Assembly (NCBI RefSeq): GCF_000143415.4
Contig: NW_003314332.1
Coordinates: 682,001-746,000, forward strand
DNA length: 64,000 bases
Direction of reading: 5' to 3'
Origin: Selaginella moellendorffii
Taxonomy: Eukaryota > Plantae > Lycopodiophyta
Within the stretch, counting starts at the first letter, position 1; each line of letters begins with the position of its first letter. Below are positions 1,137 through 15,733 of the stretch, one piece after another. The notes below the pieces were generated by a model. That model ran no database searches and had not been told where the DNA came from. It saw nothing but the letters and a program-made list of their open reading frames with translations. Both the position numbers and the translations under genes were made by a program.

Positions 1137-3383
1137 TCACGATGTGGATGTTTGGGCGGCACAAAAATCTGGAGTAAGATACATGTTTGATAGCATCACA
1201 TATGGGGAAGCGTTATTTACGTCAAGCTGGATCATCTCTTTGATCACTCGCATTCCACGGTTGAAATCGTGGTGCATCCTACAACCATTCAACAATGTCG
1301 TCCAAGCCACCAGTTTTGTGTCTGGCGTATATTTCGGCACCAATTCTATGGTTTTCTCTGCGTCATCCAGCTTGCCTACTCGCCCTAACACGTCTACCAT
1401 GCAAATGTAATGGTCCACAATTGGCGTAATCCCATAGTCTCCAAGCATTGTGCCAAAGTAGCAAATGCCGCAGTGCTCCAAGATGCCGCCGTGACTACAC
1501 GCGGACAAGATCCCAACGAATGTAACCTCGTCCACGTCGACGCCCTGGAGCTGCATGGCTCGCCACAGCTCCAGCGATTGGACCTCGCGACCAGCCTGGG
1601 CATATGCCGTGATCATGGAGTTCCACGTCCACGTGTCCTTGCCCGCCATTTCGTCAAATAGCAGCCGTGCGGTGTCCAACACTCCACACCTGCCGTACAT
1701 GGTCACCAGCGCGTTGCCCAGAGCCATCTCGGTTTCGAGTCCCCTCGCCACCACCTCCTCATGGACGAGCTCGCCCACTCGCAAATCGGCCACGCTCCCG
1801 CAGACGTCGATCACGCTCACAAAGGTGATATCGTCGGCTGGGATGCCCTCCACGTCCATCTCCTGGAAGAGACGAATGGCCTCGCCGCCCACCCCGTTCT
1901 GTCCGTACGCCGCAATCATTGCGTTCCACGTCACCGCGCTCCTGATTGGCATGTCGTCAAACATTCGCCGCGCGTCCGCCACGTACCCCGCCTGGGCATA
2001 TGCCGACAGCATCGCATTCCTGGCCACCACATCCCAGCGTGGCATTCCATCGAATATCCTCCTGGCCTCATCAATGTGACCGCTCTCCGCGTACGCCACA
2101 AGCAGATTGGTCCACGACAAAAGCGACTTGTACGGCATGCTGTCAAAAAGGACTTTTGCGGCCAGTAGGTGCCCGTTCTGGGCATACACGGTCACCATCG
2201 CATTCCACGTCACCCCGTCCCGCCGCGTCATCTCGTCGAATAGCTGCCTGGCCTCGTCCACGTCACCGTTTAGCCCGTAGCCAGTGATCATGGCATTCCA
2301 CGCTGTAACGTCGCGCTGGCGCTTCCCCAATCCATCAAAGATTTTGCGGGCCTCTCGTACGTCCCAAGCCCTGGCATATCCACTTATCATGGTGCTCCAC
2401 GTCACCGCGTCCCTCTCATCCATACGGTCGTACAGCTCCCGCGCAGCGTCCATGTCCCCATGTGACGCGTAGGCAGCCAGCATGGCGTTGCAAGTCACCG
2501 TGTTCCTCTCTGGCATTTTAGCAAACAATGACGTGGCTCTTGCAAGATGGCCGTTCTGGGCATATGCGGTTACCAGGGCAGTCCAAGAAACGACGTTTGG
2601 ATTCGGAATCTGGTCAAAGAGATTCTTTGCCTCGACAACACTTCCTCGTTTTGCATACGCTGTGACTAACGCATTATACGAAGCTTCATCCTTCCCTGGC
2701 ATATTGTCAAAGAGCGCCTTGGCTTCCTCCAGAATGCCATTGCTGGCATACGCGGCGAGCATGGCATTCCACGCAACTACATTTTTCCGAGTCATCTTAT
2801 CAAACAAAGCTTTTGCCTCGCGCACGTCCTGGTTTTGAGAGTAAGCCGTGATCATAACTGTCCAGGAGAACTCGTTTCTGTCTGGCATCTTGTCGAAGAG
2901 CTTCCGAGCCTCACGGAGATGCCCTTTTTGGGCATATGCAGCCACGATAGCGGTCCACGAAACAACGGTCGGATCCGGCATGGCATCGAACAGCGTTCGA
3001 GCATCCTCCAGATTCCCATTCGATGCATACGACGTGATAAGACAGTTCCAGGTGACGGAATTGGGACGGGGCATCTTCTCAAACATGGTCTTGGCGTCGT
3101 CAAGATGCCCATTCTTGGCATATGCTGAGATGACCAGGTTCCACGAGTAGGCGTTGGGGCGTGAGATGCCGTCAAACACCCGGCGAGCGTCATCCACACT
3201 GCCACACTTTCCAAACATTTCCAGGAAAAGATTCGACAGGAACCTGTCTCCGGTGTGCTCGCTCGCCAGGAATTGCTCGTGGAGACGTTTTCCAGCTCGC
3301 AAATCCTTCGTGTTTCCGCAAGCACGGATCTTCTCGGCACAAGCGGATGCATCCAACCCATCAATCGAGGCCAAAGACCACAT
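1137..3383 (-). CDS. PLS-class PPR protein, E subgroup without DYW (organellar RNA-editing factor-like)
   Basis: 748 aa intronless ORF; ~31-aa repeats (A..LFD.MP.R.VVSWN.MI.AY); ends HYICMVDVLGRVG...WTTLLNGC...YVMLSNMY. Confidence 0.92.
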   Translation of the reverse strand: MWSLASIDGLDASACAEKIRACGNTKDLRAGKRLHEQFLASEHTGDRFLSNLFLEMFGKCGSVDDARRVFDGISRPNAYSWNLVISAYAKNGHLDDAKTMFEKMPRPNSVTWNCLITSYASNGNLEDARTLFDAMPDPTVVSWTAIVAAYAQKGHLREARKLFDKMPDRNEFSWTVMITAYSQNQDVREAKALFDKMTRKNVVAWNAMLAAYASNGILEEAKALFDNMPGKDEASYNALVTAYAKRGSVVEAKNLFDQIPNPNVVSWTALVTAYAQNGHLARATSLFAKMPERNTVTCNAMLAAYASHGDMDAARELYDRMDERDAVTWSTMISGYARAWDVREARKIFDGLGKRQRDVTAWNAMITGYGLNGDVDEARQLFDEMTRRDGVTWNAMVTVYAQNGHLLAAKVLFDSMPYKSLLSWTNLLVAYAESGHIDEARRIFDGMPRWDVVARNAMLSAYAQAGYVADARRMFDDMPIRSAVTWNAMIAAYGQNGVGGEAIRLFQEMDVEGIPADDITFVSVIDVCGSVADLRVGELVHEEVVARGLETEMALGNALVTMYGRCGVLDTARLLFDEMAGKDTWTWNSMITAYAQAGREVQSLELWRAMQLQGVDVDEVTFVGILSACSHGGILEHCGICYFGTMLGDYGITPIVDHYICMVDVLGRVGKLDDAEKTIELVPKYTPDTKLVAWTTLLNGCRMHHDFNRGMRVIKEMIQLDVNNASPYVMLSNMYLTPDFCAAQTSTS

Positions 3384-3390
3384 CTCGTCT

Positions 3391-5889
3391 TCATCGATTC
3401 GTGGTGTTCCTTCTGGATCCCTGAATCTCCGTGTAGAGATTGGAGAGCAGTGTCAAGGAGGAGGAATCGGTGGAATCCCTGGACATGATCTCGTTGACAG
3501 CCGCAATCGCACCACGTCCTACATTTCCGTGGACTCTACACGCTCCCAGAAAGCTCGACCACAAAACACTATCAGGCTCGAAGGGCATGGATGCCACAAG
3601 GCCATCGGCGGCGGCGAGCTCCCCGGCGCGCCCAAGAACATCGATGAAGCACGCGTAGTGATCCACAGTAGCTTCGATTCCAAAATCCGCCCACATTCCA
3701 ACGAAGTAGCTCCTTCCCAATTCGACATCGCCCTTGTGGCTACACGCCGCAAGAACACTGACGAAGCTCACCTCGCTGGGCGTGAATCCCGCCTGGGCCA
3801 TGCGACCGAAGAACTCTAGCGTTTCATCGCCAGAGCACACTGCGAGCATCGAATTCCAGGACACTACGTCGCGATGCTCCATCCGCGAGAAGATCTTGTG
3901 GGAATCGGCGACGCTGCCGCAGCGCCTAAACATCGCAATGAGCGCATTCGACAGCATTGGATCGTCGCGTTCCAATCCTCGCACCGATACCTCGAATTGG
4001 ATCACGCGGCAGAGGGCCTCGATCCCTAGGGCAGCGCAGGCGGCAATGGCGGCCATGAATGTGATGTTGGTGAATTCCAGCCCTAGAACGTCCATGCCAC
4101 ACAGCACAGCCAACGCTTCTTTGCCATGCCCAAACTGGGCATATGCTGATGCCATGGCTGTCCACGTCACCACGTCCTTCTCAGGCATAGTATTGAAGAG
4201 CTCTTGTGCTTCTCGCATGTAACCTAATTGCGCGTATCCTACCAGGAGGCTTGTGTAGGTGATAATGTTTCTTTGTGTCATGAAATCAAACACACTCTTA
4301 GCCACGTCAAGATGCCCGCATTGGGCATATCCAGCGATTAATGCGTTCCCACTTACAACGTTAGAATGAGGATTTTGGTCATAGAGAATCTTGGCATGGG
4401 AAAGTTGATGTTGTGAGCAGTAAGCAGTGATCATGGTGTTCCAGGAGGCAGAATCTGGATTTGGGATCTGGTCGAAGAATTGCCGAGCTCGATGAACATC
4501 CCCTCCCTGGGCATATCCCGCAAGCATCGCATTCCAGGAGACGATGTTCTTCCGCGGGGCTGGAATCTGATCAAAAACGTTTCTGGCCTTTACGAGATCG
4601 TTGCTCTGCGTGTAGCCCGAAACGATCGAAGCCCAAGACACCGTATCTCTCTCCAGCATAGAATCAAACAACTCTTTCGCCTCGCGCACACAGCCATTTT
4701 GATTGTAGGCGATGATCATCGCATTGCAGGATCCAATCCCCGGGCTGGGGCCGATGGAATCAAAGAGGCGCCTCGAGGAATCAAGCTGCCCATACTGACC
4801 GTACGCAGAGATGATCGCGTTCCATGTAGCCTCCGTCCGATCGGGTACGGCGTCAAACAGCCGACGGGCGAGATGGAGCTGACCCTGCTGACCGTACATC
4901 GCGATCATGGTCGTCCACGTGACCACATCGCGGCCAGGCATCTCGTCAAACAGGGCTTGGGCTTCCAGTAAATGCCCAGCGCGGGCATTTGCCGAGAGAA
5001 GAATATTCCATGATATAACGTCTCTCTCGGGCATCTGGTGGAACAGGGCAAGGCATTCGCGGACATTGCCATCGTGGCAATAGGCGGAGAGGATGAGGTT
5101 CCAGGAGATTAGGTTTTCTCGATTCGCCACGCGATCGAAGAGCTCCCTTGCGCGATCGATGCTCTCGCCGTGTTGCGCGAGGCCGGCGAGGATGGAATTC
5201 GTCGATAGGTCGTCTCTTTCTGGCATCCGATCGAAGATTTCCTGTGCCTGGTAGACGCGGCCGTGGTGGGAGTAAGCAGCCAGGAGCGCGTTGTAGGAAA
5301 CGAGGTTGCGCTGGGGCATGGCGGTGAAGATCTGCTCGGCATCGCCAAGATTTCCAAGCCGGGCGTGTGCCGTGAGCATGGAATTCCAGGACACCAGATC
5401 TTTGTCCGGCATTCCATCGAAGAGATCTCTGGCTTCTTGGAGCTTCCCCGATCGCGAGCACGCGGCGATCAAGATATTCCAGGCCATCTCGTTCCTCTCC
5501 GGCATGCAGTGATCGAAGAAGGATTTGGCGTGGAGGATCTGGCCGGTGTGCGCGTAGGCGGCGAGAACGGAGGTCCAAGACACGACATTGGTGAGAGGCA
5601 TGCGATCCAGCGCGATCTTGGCGTCACTGGCGCTGCCGCGGCGGGCGTGGGTGGAGAGCGCGATGTTCCAGGAGAAGAGATTGGGGTGAGGGATCTGGGA
5701 GAAGACGAGGAGCGCGCGGTCGAGATGGCCGCAGTTGCGATACATCTCCATGACGAGATTGCACAGGAAGACATTGTGGCGGTGATTGGAGGCGAGGATC
5801 TGAGCGTGCAGCGCCTGGCCCTGTGCCACATTCTTGGATCTGGATGCCTGCTTGAGCAGCGCCGCGTAGTGATCTGTGTCGTGCATCAA
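3391..5889 (-). CDS. PLS-class PPR protein, E subgroup without DYW
   Basis: 832 aa intronless ORF of PPR repeats; C-terminal HYACFIDVLGRAG...WSSFLGAC...LLSNLY. Confidence 0.92.
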   Translation of the reverse strand: MMHDTDHYAALLKQASRSKNVAQGQALHAQILASNHRHNVFLCNLVMEMYRNCGHLDRALLVFSQIPHPNLFSWNIALSTHARRGSASDAKIALDRMPLTNVVSWTSVLAAYAHTGQILHAKSFFDHCMPERNEMAWNILIAACSRSGKLQEARDLFDGMPDKDLVSWNSMLTAHARLGNLGDAEQIFTAMPQRNLVSYNALLAAYSHHGRVYQAQEIFDRMPERDDLSTNSILAGLAQHGESIDRARELFDRVANRENLISWNLILSAYCHDGNVRECLALFHQMPERDVISWNILLSANARAGHLLEAQALFDEMPGRDVVTWTTMIAMYGQQGQLHLARRLFDAVPDRTEATWNAIISAYGQYGQLDSSRRLFDSIGPSPGIGSCNAMIIAYNQNGCVREAKELFDSMLERDTVSWASIVSGYTQSNDLVKARNVFDQIPAPRKNIVSWNAMLAGYAQGGDVHRARQFFDQIPNPDSASWNTMITAYCSQHQLSHAKILYDQNPHSNVVSGNALIAGYAQCGHLDVAKSVFDFMTQRNIITYTSLLVGYAQLGYMREAQELFNTMPEKDVVTWTAMASAYAQFGHGKEALAVLCGMDVLGLEFTNITFMAAIAACAALGIEALCRVIQFEVSVRGLERDDPMLSNALIAMFRRCGSVADSHKIFSRMEHRDVVSWNSMLAVCSGDETLEFFGRMAQAGFTPSEVSFVSVLAACSHKGDVELGRSYFVGMWADFGIEATVDHYACFIDVLGRAGELAAADGLVASMPFEPDSVLWSSFLGACRVHGNVGRGAIAAVNEIMSRDSTDSSSLTLLSNLYTEIQGSRRNTTNR

Positions 5890-6599
5890 ATTGGCACTTT
5901 TTAAAAGACCTAAAACATTAACATGGAAGTTTTAAATTAGAATGTTAGCTAATTTAATTATGCTTTGTTCTAGAATTTCAGTGCTCAAATTCTTGGCGGA
6001 AAACACTCTCTTTGCAACTATTCATCATGTTCATCTTTGCCACAACTTTTCTTACCTCTATTTTCATCTATAGTAGATTTTTTATTAGCATCACTAGCAA
6101 TGGCACAAACCAACTCAATTCATTCTTTTCCATAACTTCTCAAGCTAACAAAAACACATTTAAAGAGTTGCACTAGCACTTAAGCCAGCACCAACACTGT
6201 AAGAATTGATCCATAGCACCTCCAACAAGCATGGTTAATTATGGTATGTATGCTAACAACATGTTTTGTTACTCTATGGGCATTGCTTCTGCTTGTAGCT
6301 AACAACACCGTGTGCCACACACACAAGTGAAAGCTTTATAGAATATTTATAGATATTTTAATAAGCATTAATATTTCTTTTTCATTTTTCAAGATCCTCA
6401 TTGTAGCATTAGCTTACTTTAATGTTAATTTCTGGTGAAAAAAAGTTAAAATTCAAAAAAATCTAATATAATAGTGTGGTAGTGTGAACAAATTACCATT
6501 ATATTTATTAATTTGATGGTGGGAGTAAAACTCCCCTTAGATTATTGCTTTTTGGACTGGCAATTACTCTTAAATTCACAAATTATTTCTATTTTTGTA

Positions 6600-8400
6600 A
6601 GGGTTTCTCATTCACACCTAACATTGTCTAAAATGTCTCCCTCTCCCACTTCTATCTTGTAGTCTACTTCTCTAGATCCACCTTTGGCTACAACATTTGA
6701 TAAATAATGCATTGTTAAAATATTATTTCCCCTTATACGGATACTCATAAAAATTAATTTATATGCCCCCCTTCGATAATGTATCCTCAAATATGGTGTC
6801 ATAGTTCCTTTTGGGGATTTAATGATTATATTACTTGTTATGAATCAGCCTCATAGAGCAGAGTAGGTAGCTTCAAGTTTTGCGGTGGAGTCACCTAGGA
6901 GGCTGACGGCCCAAAAGTAGTGCTAAGCATTCATGTTCATGGTTTCACAGGTGGCTTCAAATTTTGCGGTGGAGTCATTTGGGAAGTGAATAGCCCAAAA
7001 ACAACATCATGTGTTCGTGCTTGATTGATTGTCTTCATAAACAAAAATCCCCATAATTGCTTCAAGAATGTGACAAGGAGTTTTTTACACATATTCCATC
7101 TATGTTTTCATAAAACTTATAAATAAACTAGCAATGCAATATAAGGTTGTCAACAAGTTTAGTTGGCACTAGAGGCCTTAACAAGTTGTGGGGAACAAAA
7201 TCAAATCTTCTATATACAGAAGGTATAAGTAAAGGCTAACCATAAAAATGTTAAAAAGATTTTTATAATGGAGTATTTCTAATGCATTAATGTGAAGTTC
7301 AAAAAATGTAAGGGATAAAGGATAGAAATCTATTGTGCATTTCACTTGTTGATCTCTTAGGTATTTTACAAGAATTGTTATACAAATTTACTAAATGGCT
7401 TGTATTAGCTTTATGGAGTATTTAGCTTCCAAAGTTCCTAAAAATGTTCCTTTTATAAAACTGTATCAAATACTTTAAAGATAATCTGCACAACTATCTT
7501 TAGATTAAAAGCCTGTTTGGCCAATGGTTCATTTAGTGTTAATCTCACTCAAAAAGATAAGGTATGGCTCTATAATAGTTATAAATAATCTAGAGAATAT
7601 AAAGCTTACTATAATGGTTTAGTAATTTTCTAAGATCATAGAATTTATAAATTTGTAGATGGGAACCATATAATTCATTTGTTATTCTTGAGAGAAATCT
7701 TCATTTATTGTGGAGTATATGTGTAAGGGACTCTTTATATACTTGGAGCAATTTAGTTGTGAGACCTTGGGTATTTAGGGCTTCTTATTTGTGAAGGCAA
7801 TTAATCATAGTGAGAATGTATTAAAGCCTATAATTGGGAAGGGGTAGAGTCTCCTTCATGTTAGGTGTAAAGTAATCCAAGGTAATTCACCTAAATCTCA
7901 ATGCTATTCAAAAGAATAAACTTTACAAGCTTTTTGAAAATCTTGAAATCTTATTAAATGTTGTTTGAAGTTCCCGTACATTCTTTAAGTTCTTCTAGAT
8001 ATAGTGTCAATGTTATTTCTAATTATATAATTGTCAAAAATGTTGTTAAAAGATTATGGCATCAAGAACACATTTTTTAACTTTTTGTTCTTTAATTTAA
8101 TAAAGTTGATGACATTTGTCATTCCATTAAACATCTTTTGGGAGCCCATTAACATGATTTATTTTATATTGTGGAAAAGTGTATTAGGTAGCTATATTAA
8201 TGATGTGAAAGAGGAATAAAGCTTGCTTAGTAGGTGGTGTGGAGAAAACATTAAAGTTCTATAATTCTACCACCTATTACTAATAAATTTACCAATGATT
8301 TTATCTTATAGTTATTTAGCATCTAAGGCTTTTTGATTGTAAAGACAATAAAAATGTGTAGTATATGCTATTTTCACTATATACCTATGATGATTTATCA
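6600..8400 (-). mobile_element. Possible highly degraded Ty3/gypsy pol relic
   Basis: AT-rich; only short stop-riddled minus-strand motif echoes (IVKIAYTTHF ~8370, IMLMG ~8150, LPLPNYR ~7840) in RT-RNaseH order. Confidence 0.3.
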
Positions 8401-8889
8401 TAGGAAAATTATAGAGCAAAACCATAACCCTTAGACATGTGGGCTAAGGGTAGTGAAGTGGAACCTAAGTTTCAAAGCTTTAAGCCACTGAACAAAGGGA
8501 TAAAGCTAAACTCTCGAGCATAAAGCTAAAGAACAAAGAAATTGGAGCACAGGACAACTCCTAAGCATATAACACAAGAAATGAAAGGATATAAGTAAAA
8601 AGCAATATTGGAACAATCCTAGAGTATCTAGCATCTTAATGTTATGATTAATAAATAAAATGGAGCCAAATGGAATGTAACATTATTATAGCATACCGAT
8701 GGTTTAATGCGAGGATATAGATACTTCACCAACTAATATGGTATTGATCTTGGGCTTAAACCTAATCTAGACACAGAACAAGGATATGCACACAAGTTTT
8801 TTAGTAGGATATAGTAGGTAATCTATACTATACCTCAAGTTAGTCAACTATAAATTATGTATGAATGAATGATATATGATAAGCAACAA

Positions 8890-10898
8890 TTGTTTTGTTT
8901 CTTTGTGGACTTTTGTAAAGCATTTGACACAATCCCACAAAAGGAACTTTTTTAGTGACTTCAAAAGTTAAATACTCCACTAAAGTTGGTATAAAATATT
9001 TATAAACTCTTGAATTTTGACTTCTAGGGAAGTACACTTTTATTTATAAGTTGTAACTCTCTTGAAAGCCTCACTTTTTTGACATCCTGGAAGGTACACT
9101 CTTATTCATGGACCAAAGCTCTCGGGTTCCACTAAATATTAATCTCAACATATAATGTAATTCCCTTAGTCAATCAATAGAATATATCAATCTCAACATG
9201 TGATATGATTCCCCTAGTCAACTAATAGAGTCTAAATTCAAGACTTTTCTAATATCAAATATAAACTCTTAAATTTAAATTTCTCAAGAGGTCACCTAGC
9301 CCAATATCATTCATGTTTAACCCCAAATATTTTAACAATTGAAAAAGGGGGTGTATTCTTATTTATGAGCCATCCCTTTTATATTTGAACCCTTATATAG
9401 ATTATCTTTCAAATCACTCTTTTTAATCATTCAATAGATCTATATAATAATTCTTGTAGAATACTCAGAAAATCAACAAACAGAATGCACAATAAGTGTC
9501 AAGCAAGGTTATCCTTTATCCCCCACATTGTTTGGATTGCACATTGATGTATTGGAAACACTCTTTTGCAATGAAAATCTTTCCAACATTCTCATGGGTA
9601 GTCTCTACTTATACCTCCTATATGCAAATGATTTGCTCATGTCTTGTTAAAGCCTCCAACACTAGCTAGACTTGCTCGCAACCAGTAGTTTATCTATGAA
9701 TCTTATGAAAATATAGGTTATGGTATTTGGCCATCTATGATAAAGAAGTGACAAAAATGACCTCCATTGCCAACATTGGTTGCTGGTGATAAGAGAAAAC
9801 TACAAGTACCTTGTATATATAGTCCACCACAAGAATCCTTGGAAGGCTAGGACAACAGAATGCATCCAAGCAAGCACAAGAGCATATTACTCACTCTAGA
9901 GTGATCTCAAGCAAGCTGGTATTTTTCAATGGGATGCACATAGACAATATTACTAAAGGTGATCACTATCCTCACATATGCTAAGGAGGTTTAGGGTTGT
10001 AGACTACGACAAATGACATGGAGGAAAATGGAACAACTTAACTATTAGTTCTTGAATACAGAATTTGGATGCAACAAAGTGGCAATTGGGATTTTAATTA
10101 TGGAATCTAGCTTGCTTCTGATTGAACTCCGAAGTGTGAAAAACACAATGCAATACATCCTAAGTTGTACTGCTGGCAAGTGAACTTGAAGAAGGCAAAA
10201 GCTAAATCTGAGCCCTTCAACTGCTGTAGGACAATGACAACCAACACATTCCCCACCCAACCTCATATGCACTGCTCAAAATAAAATGGTTAAGTATGTT
10301 TTCTCAGATTTTATCAACCTTGCTAGAGATATCAGCAAAGGCTGGTGGCACAATCCTAGACAAAAGATTTGGGCAAGGATCTTGAGACCCTCCTTAAAGA
10401 AAATACCATAGATGTCCCAAACCATTGGCTTGAGTGAGCTTTCCAATGGTGGCTTCAAGGGGCTCAACACGATCCAAAATTCCAGCACTATTTATTAGTT
10501 ATCAACCTGCAAAGGCTTATTGGTATTGCTATTTACTGATCTATGGGACAACAGAATCCTGGCACACTATTGAGTGGGATAACATTGCCTGCACTCAGAA
10601 GTTAGGAGGACCAAATCTGTTATTTATACATTGAAGATAGTCAAACTGTCCTACACTTCACCACTGCATACAAACAACAATGGGACAAAGAACTGCTCCT
10701 TAATTTTGATTTGCCCCTCCCTCTCTTCCTCTAGCAATGGCAATACTAATGACTTTGTGAGTACCTTATTGCAACCACAAATTTGCACAATGAGCTACTT
10801 GCCATCCTTGAATTTACACATCCACAGTAGATAGGATGGTCTCATGCCCTTGGATCCTCATGACTTGAAATAGCTGTTATTATTATTATTATTATTAT
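8890..10898 (+). mobile_element. Degenerate non-LTR retrotransposon (LINE, RTE-like) RT remnant with (TTA)n tail
   Basis: FVDFCKAFDTIP at ~8900, SVKQGYPLSPTLFGLHID at ~9495, LLYANDL (YADD) at ~9615, NYKYL at ~9800, ending in a TTA tandem tail at 10877-10898. Confidence 0.65.
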
Positions 10899-11176
10899 GA
10901 CAATGGAGGATCTTTGCAATCCATTGCACTCTGCCATACCAGATTCAATCATTCCCCACACGGTTTAGAAATCACAGAAGTGGAAATACTTACAACCTAG
11001 AAGTTGTAAATTATAAGGGTAATGGTAACTGTAATGGAAAATATATCAAATTTCCTAAAATTTCGCCCTTAACGTTAAAGGTAAGCCCTAGGTCCTCACA
11101 TTCTTCTTTGCAAACCAATTGAGAGTTCTTAGCATTCTTATTAGTCTTATTAGAAAAAGAGACTGACGAAGTCCTT

Positions 11177-11758
11177 CTAAATGGACCATTCAAGCTGTAA
11201 GACCGTGGGTTCATCCTGGTCTTTGCCAACATATCTACAATCCACACCAAATTCCATGGCCAGCCCATTAATAAAGAAATAAATCTCCTCCCTCGGCACC
11301 TCCTTGAGCATAACCTTACTGCAAAACTCATGGTTTCCCGTGAGGAAAACAAAGTCTTCTCTATCCCAGCACCCGCTGATCCACTGCTGGAATGACTCTT
11401 TCGCTTCCTGGCCTAAGGTATCAAACCAGAGTTGCATGCTCCTCCAGTCCAGAAAAACGTCCCAAATAAAAGGTGTACAAACCTCGGGATCCTCCTCGTA
11501 CCAGCACCAACCTTCATCATCGTCGCGTTGCATACTGTTTGGAGCAAAGAATTGCGCGCCACCAACTATCATCCGCTGCTTCCAAGCTACCAGCATTGGC
11601 TCGGTTTCTAGGGTTTGAGCGGCAAGGCTGTCGCAGATGTAGGTCCTAGGGGAAGAGCACAGACGAGTGAATCTAAAAACGTAGCTGTGGATGTACCTTA
11701 TTTCAGAGCTCGGACGATTGATGATACCCATCCAGTGAGCTTTGTGCCATTGCAACAT
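11177..11758 (-). CDS. Uncharacterised protein homologous to the C-terminal (degenerate PIN-like) domain of the divergent gene; probable 51-nt intron 11646-11696
   Basis: Shares WHK..W, Y.CDS, AWK, FFAP.S, GW..Y, VFLTGN..F, GLAM.F..D.R, DEP.VL.L.WS with 12600-13084(+). An in-frame GTACAT...CCCTAG intron gives EIRTYICDS. Confidence 0.6.
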   Translation of the reverse strand: MLQWHKAHWMGIINRPSSEIRYIHSYVFRFTRLCSSPRTYICDSLAAQTLETEPMLVAWKQRMIVGGAQFFAPNSMQRDDDEGWCWYEEDPEVCTPFIWDVFLDWRSMQLWFDTLGQEAKESFQQWISGCWDREDFVFLTGNHEFCSKVMLKEVPREEIYFFINGLAMEFGVDCRYVGKDQDEPTVLQLEWSI

Positions 11759-11794
11759 TGAAAACCTACGGTTTATTAGGGCTCAGGGGAGATT

Positions 11795-12907
11795 ATGTTG
11801 TCGATGGAGCCACCGCCGATTGTTGCGAGTAGGGACATCTGTGTTGACACGAATCTCGTGATCTACTTCGTAGACGGCGATGCGAGTCCTCAGCTGGAAT
11901 CTTACCTCCGTGCATCGGTGGCCGCTGGAAGCAAGCTCTTGCTCACCAATGGCGTCTCGGGTTAGAGCTTAGTTTCTATGCTTTGATACTAAGTTTCTAG
12001 CTTTTTAGAGGAGCTGCGGCGCCTGCGCCCCACTTTCACCGGCACCTCGAGAGGTTTGACGTTCACACGATACTGTAACAGCGCACAGGAGGTAGCAGAC
12101 GCTGATCGAATTCTCCCGCTGGTGCGGCAGCAAGTCCACTATAACTTTGGTGGAATGCAGGTGAGTAATGCAGGATCTTTGCAGAACTGACTTTGTTTTG
12201 ATTGAATGCAGGTGACCGACTTGAGGATCGCACTTGAATCTTGCATGATCAGCAGTCGGGCTGAATATCATGGGCCTCGGACACTCTTCCTTCTGACCAA
12301 CGACAAGAAATTCGCGACAAGCTTCACTGTTGGGGGTCCTGGGTTGGTCGAGGTCCTAGCCGACCAATTGGCCGGTAACCTGTGTCCGGTGGTCTCCTTC
12401 CAGTCACTAGGCGCTGAGGCTTTCGTTCCAAGACGACGATCGCAGAAAACCACTGGCACCGCCGGTACCGGGCCTGGAAGTGGTAGAACCTCTGGTGGCA
12501 GCCCGCGGCCGCTCGGAGGCAGCAATCAGCATGGCGGCAAGGGAACTTCCGCTTCTGCTCCCAGTGTGGCATCTCCTGGACCTTCCAAGGTGTGGAAGCC
12601 GAAATCCAATTTGCTGGTGGAGCTACTTGCATGGCACAAAAGCTTGTGGATCAGCTTGAGCAGCAGGAAGCCGCTGGAAGTTCACTACTACTACTGTGAC
12701 AGCAGCGCGTTTGATGCGCTCCAGCGAGGTCCGCTGCGTGCATGGAAGAAAAGCCTCGGCAAAGTCTGCTTCTTTGCACCCTTGAGTGCTGTTAGGACTG
12801 GAGCAGCATCCGGGTGGTCTCCCTACCGAAACAAGTACGGGATCGAGCTTTCAGGTTTTAACGATGGTGGTGACGAACTTCATTGCTGCATCGGCTACTG
12901 CTCCTGA
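11795..12907 (+). CDS. PIN/VapC-like ribonuclease-domain protein; exons 11795-11960, 12009-12160, 12212-12907 (~337 aa); homology continues past frameshifts to 13084
   Basis: Spliced translation: DICVDTNLVIYF...LLLTNGVSEELRR...MQVTDLRIALESC...LFLLTNDKKF, the D/E/D/TxD acidic quartet of PIN domains; GT-AG introns of 48 and 51 nt. Confidence 0.7.
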
Positions 12908-13139
12908 CGAGAGGCCCGTGTTCCTCACTGGCAATGCCAAGTTCGCCAAACGGTTCAGGAAAGAAGCATTTCGTGAAGCCGTCTACCAGGGCTAGCAATG
13001 CCGTTCCTGATTGACGTCCGAATGATCGATGGGACGAAGGACGAGCCTCAAGTGCTGGAATTGCAGTGGTCAGGTGCGAATTAATCAGCGCGTCCGAGAA
13101 GAATTTTGGAGCCTGTAAATTTTGAGAGACTGTCAACGC

Positions 13140-14199
13140 GAAACGTTACCGCGTCCTCCGTTCGATCGGGCACGGCAGTCGAACAGCTGACGGGCAAGAT
13201 GGAGCTGACCGTGCTGACCGTACGGTCGTCCACGTGACCACGGTGACCGCATCGCGGCATCTCGTCAAACAGGGCTTTCAGTAAATGCCCAGTTCGGGCA
13301 TATGCCGCGAGAAGAATATTCCATGAGATAACGTCTCTCTCGGGCATCTGGTGAAACAGGGCAAGCCATTCGCGGACATTGCCATCGTGGGAGAGGATGA
13401 GGTTCCAGGAGATTAGGTTTTCTCGATTCGCCACGCGATCGAAGAGCTCCCTCGCGCGATCGATGCTCGCGCCGTGTTGCGCGAGGCCGGCGAGGATGGA
13501 ATTCGCCGATAGGTCGTCTCTTTCCGGCATCCGATCGAAGATTTCCTGTGCCTGGTCGACGCGGCCGTGGTGGGAGTAAGCAGCCAGGAGCGCGTTGTAG
13601 GAAACGAGGTTGCGCTGGGGCATGGCGGTGAAGATCTGCTCGGCATCGCCAAGATTTCCAAGCCGGGCGTGTGCCGTGAGCATGGAATTCCAGGACACCA
13701 GATCTTTGTCCGGCATTCCATCGAAGAGATCTCTGGCTTCTTGGAGCTTCCCCGATCGCGAGCACGCGGGGATCAAGATATTCCAGGCCATCTCGTTCCT
13801 CTCCGGCATGCAGTGATCGAAGAAGGATTTGGCGTGGAGGATCTGGCCGGTGTGCGCGTAGGCGGCGAGCACGGAGGTCCAAGACACGACATTGGTGATA
13901 GGCATGCGATCCAGCGCGATCTTGGCGTCACTGGCGCTGCCGCGGCGGGCGTGGGTGGAGAGCACGATGTTCCAGGAGAAGAGATTGGGGTGAGGGATGT
14001 GGGAGAAGACGAGGAGCGCGCGGTCGAGATGGCCGCAGTTGCGATGCATCTCCATGACGAGATTGCACAGGAAGACATTGTGGCGGTGATCGGAGGCAAG
14101 GATCTGAGCGTGCAGTGCCTGGCCCTGTGCCACATTCTTGGATCTGGATGCCTGCTTGAGCAGCGCCGCGTAGCGATCGCGATCCGTGTGGTCCAACAT
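13140..14199 (-). pseudogene. Truncated duplicate of the 5' ~1.06 kb of the PPR gene at 3391-5889
   Basis: Near-identical DNA to ~4820-5880 with small deletions and a frameshift near 13250; lacks the C-terminal half. Confidence 0.85.
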
Positions 14200-14240
14200 A
14201 GACTTGGGAGTTTTAGGGTTCTTGGAGGAAGCTTTGAGCG

Positions 14241-15733
14241 ATGGCGGAGGAGCTGGATGAGCTCTTGATGTTCCTTTCTTCGCCAGCGCCAAACGTAAGA
14301 GTTTGTTTCCATTTCATTGCGCCTGACAAGAGCTCCTTTCGCAGCTTAGAAAGGCCGCGGTAGACATCATCGAAGGCTTGACTGGAAGCGACGAGGGGAT
14401 TGCCAAGCTCAGCACCAAGCTCTCGATTCTCCTCCCGGCTCTCGTACAGCTCCTTGCTGGTAACAAGGCAAGAAGCGGATCCATGTCTAGTGCCTAAAAG
14501 CCTGTGAATGATCTTACGTCCAGCTCGTTGCGAAGCCAGCGGCAGGAGCTCTGGTCAATCTGTCACAGGATCAGGAAGTGGGAGAGATGCTGCTTGAACT
14601 GGGAGCTGTTGCAAGCGCCATGGATCAGATAGGCAAGCAAGGCCAGGACGTGGATAAGCTCATGGTGATGCTCCTCGTGAACTTGACGACTCTAGAGCCT
14701 GGTGCTCGGCTGCTATGCGAGGTGTGATGCTTGCTCTCCTTCGCCATCTCCAAATCTCTCTTACAATTTTCTTGCTAGGAGGGCGATGAGAAGCTCAAAG
14801 GACTACATATGAGTCGTCTCGTGAGATTGTTCTCGCGGACCCCAGAAGAAGGTATGATAAGAAAGCTGTTCTTGTACACTACCTGTGTGTGTTGCGTAGG
14901 TGACGATGCGTACGAGCACGTTGGAGCAATTCTTGTCAACGTATCGCGAACGGACTTGGGACGCAAGCTCATGCTGGACACCAAGCGAGGCCTCTTGAAA
15001 CAGGTTTTACGCCAATGCGACTCCAAGAGTCTTGTTCGCAGGCGAGGAGTAAGTTGATGAAAAAATCTGTTTCGTTAGATAAGTTTTGCGACTTTCTCAT
15101 CTTTGTTCTTCGTGCGCAGGTGATTGGCACCATCCGCAACTGTTGTTTTGAAGCTCCGTCCCATCTGCCGAGCTTGCTTTCCCTGTCCGAGCTTCTGTGG
15201 CCATGTCTCATCCTTCCAGCCGCAGGAAGCAAGGTCTTACTCAATTGTTGCACCATTGCGGGAATTCAGCTAAGCCCTCTCTCGTCGACGTGATGCCGCA
15301 GATCTATAGCGAAGAGGAGCGATCCAAGATGCCCCCGGAGCTGGCGGTTCCATTGTCCATAGAACGCCAGGCGGAACCAGACTCCCAGATCCGTCGCGAA
15401 GCCTTGGATGCTCTCTACCTGCTCATAAAGCAGGTGAAGTGAAGCGCTAGACTTTCTAGATCCGATCCCCAGGGCTGATTTTGTGGTCGTGTACCAGGAG
15501 GCTGGATTTAGAGCGTTTTGGGAGCTCGGTGGAGCCGACGTTCTCAAGTCCGGCTACGAGAACGAAGAAGATCCGGAAGTCATGGACAAGTACGAGCAGC
15601 TGGGGTCACTGGTAAGAACTGACACACACGCACTTCTTTTTTTCTCCCTGCATGCGCGTACGTATCAAACTCAAACACATTCTTCTACGCGTGCGCGTCA
15701 CAGATCATCGCGCAGAGTGGCAGCAGCTCTTGA
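14241..15733 (+). CDS. HGH1: HGH1/FAM203 homolog (eEF2 chaperone), multi-exon
   Basis: MAEELDELLMFLSSPAPN|LRKAAVDIIEGLTGSDEG..., ALVNLSQ, LMVMLLVNLT, YEHVGAILVNVS, GTIRNCCFE, GYENEEDPEVM; short GT-AG introns. Confidence 0.85.

Follow-up and report, generated by a model that had tools for sequence, protein, structure and literature searches.

We have analysed a window of 64,000 nucleotides from the spikemoss Selaginella moellendorffii (GL377636.1:682001-746000, GCA_000143415.2; the sequence identity is complete over the 20,555 bases compared), in which two genes are transcribed away from each other. Positions are counted from the first base of the window. On the minus strand lies a small gene, LOC112340870, and on the plus strand a larger gene, SELMODRAFT_425059, the product of which is PIN-like in its N-terminal half and ends in a diverged copy of the domain that makes up the small protein. 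The two copies are referred to as the stand-alone and the fused copy. The start codons (11756-11758 on the minus strand and 11795-11797 on the plus strand) stand head to head and are separated by a spacer of only 36 bp (11759..11794), inside which an A/T-rich stretch (TTTATTA / TAATAAA) is found. An earlier interpretation made from the letters of the DNA only (the sequence-only reading) had placed the ATGs at 11758 and 11795, and the small gene at 36 bp from the PIN gene, and these coordinates are confirmed. Neither of the two gene identifiers was mentioned in any of the papers that we found.

The stand-alone gene coincides with a minus-strand open reading frame (ORF) at 11177-11758 that counts 193 amino acids in raw form. 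The RefSeq protein of LOC112340870 (XP_024515786.1, hereafter P0001) is named 'uncharacterized protein' and matches the ORF for 100% outside an intron of 51 nt (11646..11696, minus strand, GT..AG), of which P0001 lacks exactly the 17 codons. The intron begins with GTAC, finishes with CTAG and is both stop-free and in frame, so that the raw ORF runs through it. It separates exon 1 (11697..11758, minus strand), which carries the conserved motif WHK..W, from exon 2 (11177..11645, minus strand), which includes the stop codon (11177-11179). The splice is independently supported by the fused copy, since in the BLASTP alignment that copy is gapped exactly at the site of the 17-codon intron. The RefSeq model starts at the second methionine (11731) and drops nine codons, among them those of the WHK..W motif that is conserved in the paralog. 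Because this motif sits upstream of 11731, the first ATG (11758) is the likelier start, or else the transcript was recently shortened; with respect to the RefSeq start itself, either the start codon was mis-set or transcription begins no further than 27 bases into the ORF. P0001 has 167 residues and a mass of 19.7 kDa, while the spliced protein from the first methionine has 176 residues and a mass of about 21 kDa (a rough value: the unspliced ORF gives 23.05 kDa, from which the 17 intron codons were taken off). These sequence features suggest that LOC112340870 is a real, spliced and protein-coding gene, which forms part of an explanation that, taken as a whole, we give an even chance.

The plus-strand gene is represented in GenBank by EFJ12860.1 (hereafter P0002), a model of 334 amino acids that covers 11804-12907 and starts at the second ATG (11804). 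Counted from the first ATG, exon 1 extends over 11795..11960 and encodes the first acidic motif, CVDTN; it is followed by intron 1 (11961..12008, 48 nt, GT..AG), exon 2 (12009..12160) with the motifs SEELRRL and ADADRI, intron 2 (12161..12211, 51 nt, GT..AG), and the first part of exon 3 (12212..12622), which encodes the end of the PIN-like domain (LLTNDKKF) and a basic linker rich in Gly, Ser, Pro and Thr. Together the introns measure 99 nt, as a 334-residue model over 11804-12907 requires; both introns are in phase, and so are all three PIN exons. The exons encode a domain of ~175 residues, after which come the basic linker and then the domain shared with the stand-alone gene. The four acidic motifs, as read by eye, follow each other in the D..E..D..D order that is typical of PIN nucleases. 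Intron 2 is flanked by a direct repeat (12146-12164 and 12197-12215; TTTGrTkGAATGCAG/GTGA) that is identical at 17/19 positions, a score reached by 3/500 shuffles. Such a repeat is the footprint expected from the birth of an intron via tandem duplication of an AGGT-containing exon segment, if the intron has so arisen; its interior is not similar to exon.

The paralogy of the two domain copies follows from several protein-level comparisons. A BLASTP comparison of the 193-residue minus-strand ORF with the three reading pieces of the 3' region of the plus-strand gene gave E = 3e-08, 5e-05 and 2e-09, and the matches are collinear. In a frame-aware protein-to-DNA alignment, made with a custom script and with the ORF minus its 17 intron codons as query (elsewhere the spliced proteins are the database models P0001 and P0002), residues 1-175 of the stand-alone protein aligned with 12623-13072 in a single collinear alignment with 66/148 identical residues. 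The motifs WHK..W, CDS, AWK, FFAP.S, VFLTGN..F, GLAM.F and DEP.VL.L.WS are common to both copies. The motif-for-motif correspondence with the C-terminal domain of the plus-strand gene that was claimed in the sequence-only reading is thereby borne out for every motif it listed. The gene structures are different: the stand-alone gene has its 51-nt in-frame intron and the fused copy has none.

At the level of DNA, the only inverted matches between the copies are of 15-17 nt, which is chance level, and synonymous sites are saturated. Since the DNA similarity is nearly gone, the copies do not form a recent inverted repeat, in agreement with what had been read from the sequence before. The possibility of a hairpin or small interfering RNA locus was ruled out for the same loss of DNA similarity. 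An inverted match of 14/15 nt between 11436-11450 and 12795-12809 raised the possibility of homology in a third frame; translation gave it no support and it was put down to chance.

A comparison of the two copies, which the sequence-only reading had proposed in the form of a dN/dS check, revealed the history of selection. The proportion of synonymous differences (pS) exceeds 0.75 and is thus saturated, whereas the non-synonymous distance (dN) is 0.62. Resolved by codon position, and with the tail, today out of frame, included, the identity is 0.49-0.53 at first, 0.58-0.69 at second and 0.15-0.29 at third positions. The pattern is even stronger in the out-of-frame tail. Because synonymous sites are saturated and second positions are conserved, both copies must have been under selection at the protein level through most of their history after the duplication. 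Protein similarity that is collinear, saturation of synonymous sites and conservation at the first two codon positions are in fact what marks an old, selected partial duplicate, and all three were found here. The charge of the copies has diverged strongly. The fused domain has a net charge of +4 and five Trp residues, and the stand-alone protein a net charge of -16, 11 Trp residues and an isoelectric point (pI) of 4.2; the stand-alone copy has diverged into a very acidic, Trp-rich protein.

The same comparisons showed how the fused copy is interrupted. Its first segment (12623..12904, plus strand) lies in the gene's own frame, in which the annotated protein stops at the TGA of 12905-12907. The second segment (12906..12989, DERPVFLTGN...EAVYQ), past the annotated stop, is readable in frame +1 only, and the third (12989..13084, GLAMPF...DEPQVLELQWS) in the original frame again, up to an ancestral stop TAA at 13082-13084. 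A +1 change near 12905 and a -1 change near 12988 thus cancel each other and leave about 84 nt (28 codons) out of register, with a TGA stop in frame 0 at 12905-07 and a TAG stop in frame +1 at 12992-94; the position of the first change is fixed no more closely than to about 12833-12906. The earlier description of a frameshifted fused copy next to an open stand-alone copy is therefore right, with the refinement that there are two compensating changes (+1 at ~12905 and -1 at ~12988). The protein as annotated ends at 12907 without the last third of the domain, and GenBank models the gene that way, whereas the ancestral length of the fused protein was about 390 amino acids. Rescue by splicing was considered and rejected: on inspection by hand, no right-phase GT..AG pair bridges either change unless the conserved VFLTGN or GLAM segments are deleted. 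The out-of-frame segments are the most conserved part of the domain (50-54% identity) and contain no internal stop in the ancestral frame. As the tail still shows the pattern of selection and is stop-free in the ancestral frame, the break is recent: the fused copy has recently lost the last and best-conserved third of its domain via a change of frame.

Such a young break could also be no break at all. If the two changes were errors of assembly or sequencing, or a null allele of a single haplotype, the fused gene would encode the full domain and the pair would be ordinary old neighbouring paralogs. The exact cancellation of two shifts just 84 nt apart is in line with this, as is the fact that the out-of-frame stretch is both the best conserved and stop-free in the ancestral frame, as one would expect of a very young allele or of a pair of wrong base calls. 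However, over 20.5 kb the window agrees base for base with the deposited scaffold, which is Sanger-based, and in an assembly of that kind two independent errors of a single base, no more than 84 nt apart, are improbable. Moreover, exact-protein look-ups with both raw ORFs and with a neighbouring PPR gene matched this scaffold only, and revealed no intact copy on a second haplotype or elsewhere in an assembly. On balance we consider an error or allele unlikely.

At each of the two changes the incoming frame meets a stop codon, in UCC UGA C (12902-12908) and GGC UAG (12990-12994), which is probably a matter of chance. One could nevertheless imagine that the full fused domain is still made via two programmed ribosomal frameshifts, a +1 shift at the first and a -1 shift at the second of these sites, because reading through both would restore the domain of the paralog without loss. 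The first site, UCC UGA, has what we take to be the same core as the +1 site of antizyme; this counts in favour of frameshifting and is regarded by us as a coincidence. To our knowledge, programmed frameshifting has no precedent in plants, and two different types of shift within one gene are without precedent altogether. In addition, the second site does not figure among the known slippery sequences, the placement of the first shift is loose (12833-12906), a hidden stop directly after an insertion or deletion is not rare, and a Rfam scan of 9000-15000 found no RNA family, and hence no stimulatory one. We therefore attach next to no probability to frameshifting.

A third possibility is that the locus is a decaying, lineage-specific relic, with a PIN-like gene that is a pseudogene and a stand-alone ORF that is still open just because not enough time has gone by, or that is a functionless artefact of annotation. 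The fused gene is indeed broken and absent among the RefSeq proteins, and neither protein has relatives in the searches described below, while the structures of both are predicted at very low confidence. Against this stands the codon-position pattern, which reflects long purifying selection in both lineages. In addition, the 193 codons of the stand-alone ORF are still open (the probability of this by chance, at the local base composition, is about 2.5e-05), the splice sites are intact in both genes and the three PIN exons are in phase. A relic is thus an improbable account of the pair.

The nature of the shared domain was approached by searches of various kinds. In Pfam, NCBIfam, PADLOC and PHROGs it had no usable match, and searches of the PDB, by sequence and with a small profile, yielded nothing relevant. 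A Pfam match to DUF5619 (E = 0.05) was rejected as chance; it is not shared by the paralog. In comparison with the PIN half of the neighbour (residues 1-175 of P0002) no similarity was detectable (local alignment z = 0.7-1.2), and the sole resemblance is that of a short motif, VFLTGN..F versus LLTNDKKF. The neighbours of the shared-domain model in the ESM Atlas reach a template modelling score (TM) of 0.3 only and have mixed folds, at a predicted local distance difference test (pLDDT) of 0.38 for the model. The domain may have a remote relationship to PIN. The label 'pseudo-PIN' given to it in the sequence-only reading is nevertheless an interpretation and not an observation, and these results lend it no support. 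Relatives were sought with a word-indexed search and with an exhaustive phmmer search over 1.84 billion representatives, and both returned the query itself only. Among the sequences searched, the domain thus appears to have no other occurrence than at the C-terminal end of the neighbouring PIN-like gene, which is a further part of the explanation that we hold at even strength as a whole.

The PIN identity of the neighbour is itself only a lead. SELMODRAFT_425059 matched no PIN profile in Pfam, NCBIfam, PADLOC or PHROGs, nor in the PDB, even at E up to 10, and residues 1-175 of P0002 and exon 3 of the plus-strand gene found only themselves in protein searches. The UniRef name 'PIN domain-containing protein' was assigned automatically. 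An AlphaFold2 model made from the single sequence is unusable (pLDDT 38.5), and its Foldseek matches are meaningless rows of proteasome entries. The assignment as PIN-like is based on the order of the acidic motifs and on the ESM Atlas neighbours of residues 8-173, which belong to PIN/VapC clusters at TM 0.69-0.70 by target, for a model of low confidence (pLDDT 0.56).

The sequence-only reading had proposed a toxin/antidote-like pair with the small protein as inhibitor or regulator in trans; the small protein would be a PIN-like decoy without activity of its own and would counteract an active, toxin-like ribonuclease of the PIN type. None of our results speaks directly for such an action. The adjacency of the genes with divergent starts 36 bp apart, the D..E..D..D order together with the PIN/VapC neighbours in the ESM Atlas (TM 0.69-0.70 by target) and the long-term selection on both copies would all suit such a pair, and an acidic small protein beside a basic nuclease protein is reminiscent of many pairs of nuclease and inhibitor. 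However, the shared domain compares to the PIN half at a z of about 1 and matches no PIN profile or PDB entry; the neighbour lacks a PIN profile match too, and its AlphaFold2 model failed. The nuclease gene is itself truncated, and the searches found no relatives and hence no conserved pairing. The architecture is also unlike that of VapBC: the two eukaryotic genes carry introns and run in opposite directions, and what sits beside the nuclease is a paralog of its own tail that matches no antitoxin or DNA-binding family. The anatomy is not that of a bacterial toxin-antitoxin module, and the toxin/antidote pair as such we regard as distinctly improbable.

Considering the above, the explanation that we prefer is that the product of LOC112340870 is a free-standing paralog of an orphan accessory domain of ~150-175 residues, which would have originated from an old local partial duplication or fusion within the Selaginella lineage and which possibly acts as a microProtein-like partner of the neighbouring gene product. 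In our estimate it has an even chance. The duplication or fusion would have given rise to the pair of domain copies. With 36 bp between the starts, both genes would have one promoter region in common or their 5' ends would overlap, and co-expression is probable: as the promoters would have to overlap or reach into each other's coding sequence, the expression of the two genes is probably coupled. The stand-alone protein would most likely act on or with the nuclease protein via the shared domain, in the manner of plant microProteins, and the effect would be either a modulation of the nuclease protein or the supply in trans of the domain that was lost by the fused copy. The loss of the fused-domain tail would fit redundancy with the free copy, and the acidic remodelling would fit an inhibitor that mimics nucleic acid, or a new function. 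Any particular sign of the effect, inhibition or help, has well below an even chance. The adjacency of the genes, the long selection on both copies and the presence of an acidic protein of pI 4.2 beside a basic one of pI 9.2 are circumstantial findings that are compatible with the role of partner or inhibitor. For the nuclease-like protein, the pI refers to the whole molecule, and the charge contrast comes mainly from its linker and tail, not from the PIN-like core, which has a net charge of -3.

Several points weigh against this explanation. The structural models of the shared domain are unusable, both the AlphaFold2 model from the single sequence (pLDDT 35.6) and that of the ESM Atlas (pLDDT 0.38), and the function of the domain as a protein-protein contact surface is a postulate. 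The phmmer search did not report even P0002, which means that paralogs of ~35% identity would be missed by it. RefSeq lists no protein for the PIN-like gene, which is known only from a GenBank model of the 2010 era; the gene may be a pseudogene, and then there would be nothing left to regulate. Finally, the RefSeq model of LOC112340870 may be an ab initio prediction, and its start at the second methionine cuts off a conserved motif. The explanation may also be drawn further, to a plant PIN-type ribonuclease that is controlled by a strongly acidic protein born from a duplicate of its own accessory domain, with the genes back to back across a shared promoter gap of 36 bp and the target's own copy being discarded. 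The small protein would then be a eukaryotic inhibitor of the microProtein or antitoxin kind. In this complete form we hold it to be very improbable.

The preferred explanation, a free paralog acting as a possible partner, can be compared with several established systems. One of these is the plant microProteins, among them LITTLE ZIPPER versus HD-ZIPIII and miP1a/b versus CONSTANS. MicroProteins are outlined in the literature as single-domain proteins of <20 kDa that bind to the related domain of larger proteins (PMC9638782, PMC4807768). Like these, the stand-alone protein is a small paralog of one domain of a multi-domain protein and is without the catalytic part, and its origin by duplication and loss of domains would be similar as well; with 19.7 kDa, P0001 falls within the size limit described there. 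In contrast, most microProtein targets known so far are transcription factors whose dimerisation domains are defined, whereas the candidate target here is nuclease-like. Moreover, the two genes at this locus are immediate head-to-head neighbours, and when counted from the first methionine the protein is slightly over the usual limit, which makes it a borderline case.

The resemblance to the type II modules of the VapBC kind lies in a candidate PIN-type nuclease, with its four acidic motifs in order, beside the gene of a small acidic protein. In those modules the gene for VapB lies upstream of that for the toxin within one operon, and VapB, which has a DNA-binding domain, is no relative of the toxin. 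At the spikemoss locus, however, which belongs to the nuclear genome of a plant, the genes are divergent with their starts 36 bp apart and contain spliceosomal introns of 48-51 nt; the small protein is paralogous to the C-terminal domain of the nuclease gene itself, with no match to a PIN or antitoxin profile. The combination of an acidic small protein (net charge -16) encoded beside a basic nuclease-like protein (pI 9.2) also recalls, purely as an analogy, barnase-barstar and the colicin-immunity pairs. Those inhibitors are bacterial and are not paralogs of parts of the nuclease, and the charge contrast here resides mainly in linker and tail and not in the PIN-like core (net -3). Next to the microProteins, the locus most closely resembles the Rosetta-stone pairs that result from fusion or fission, in that one domain occurs both fused and separate, which is a classical hint of joint working. 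The difference is that both forms lie side by side in a single genome and that the fused form is breaking down, like a fission in progress.

The locus is in any case an orphan instance of a partial gene duplicate that yielded a single-domain paralog. If the functional link is true, it would provide a natural example of the birth of a microProtein from the partial duplicate of its target, with a nuclease and not a transcription factor as that target, and of a domain fission caught in progress, in which the fused copy is freshly broken and the free copy was kept and remodelled. If the link is false, it would be one more lineage-specific pair of orphan genes in a lycophyte genome, and the chief use of the analysis would lie in the correction of annotation, with regard to the start codon of LOC112340870 and to SELMODRAFT_425059 as a truncated gene or pseudogene.

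The surroundings consist of densely packed spikemoss genes and have the character of plant nuclear sequence. To the right of the locus lie the genes for a cytochrome b5, a DUF383/384 protein and a WW/zinc-ribbon protein. Three PPR genes are found on the minus strand (1137-3383, 3391-5889 and 13081-14292). The first two (748 and 832 amino acids, respectively) are both large and intronless and are separated by a gap of 7 bp; a weak E-motif is present at the C-terminal end of the second. The third is positioned tail to tail with the PIN-like gene, and at 13081-13084 a single TTAA provides the TAA of the ancestral PIN-like frame on the plus strand (13082-84) and the TAA of the PPR gene on the minus strand (13081-83). 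Because the stops share this one TTAA, the 3' ends of the PPR gene and of the ancestral PIN-like frame must overlap. To the left of the stand-alone gene, a stretch of ~5.3 kb (about 5900-11000) is AT-rich (GC about 0.32) and without genes. It contains two inverted arms of 54 nt (7271-7324 and 9510-9563) that are 81% complementary and may mark the two ends of a terminal-inverted-repeat element of 2.3 kb, now decayed.

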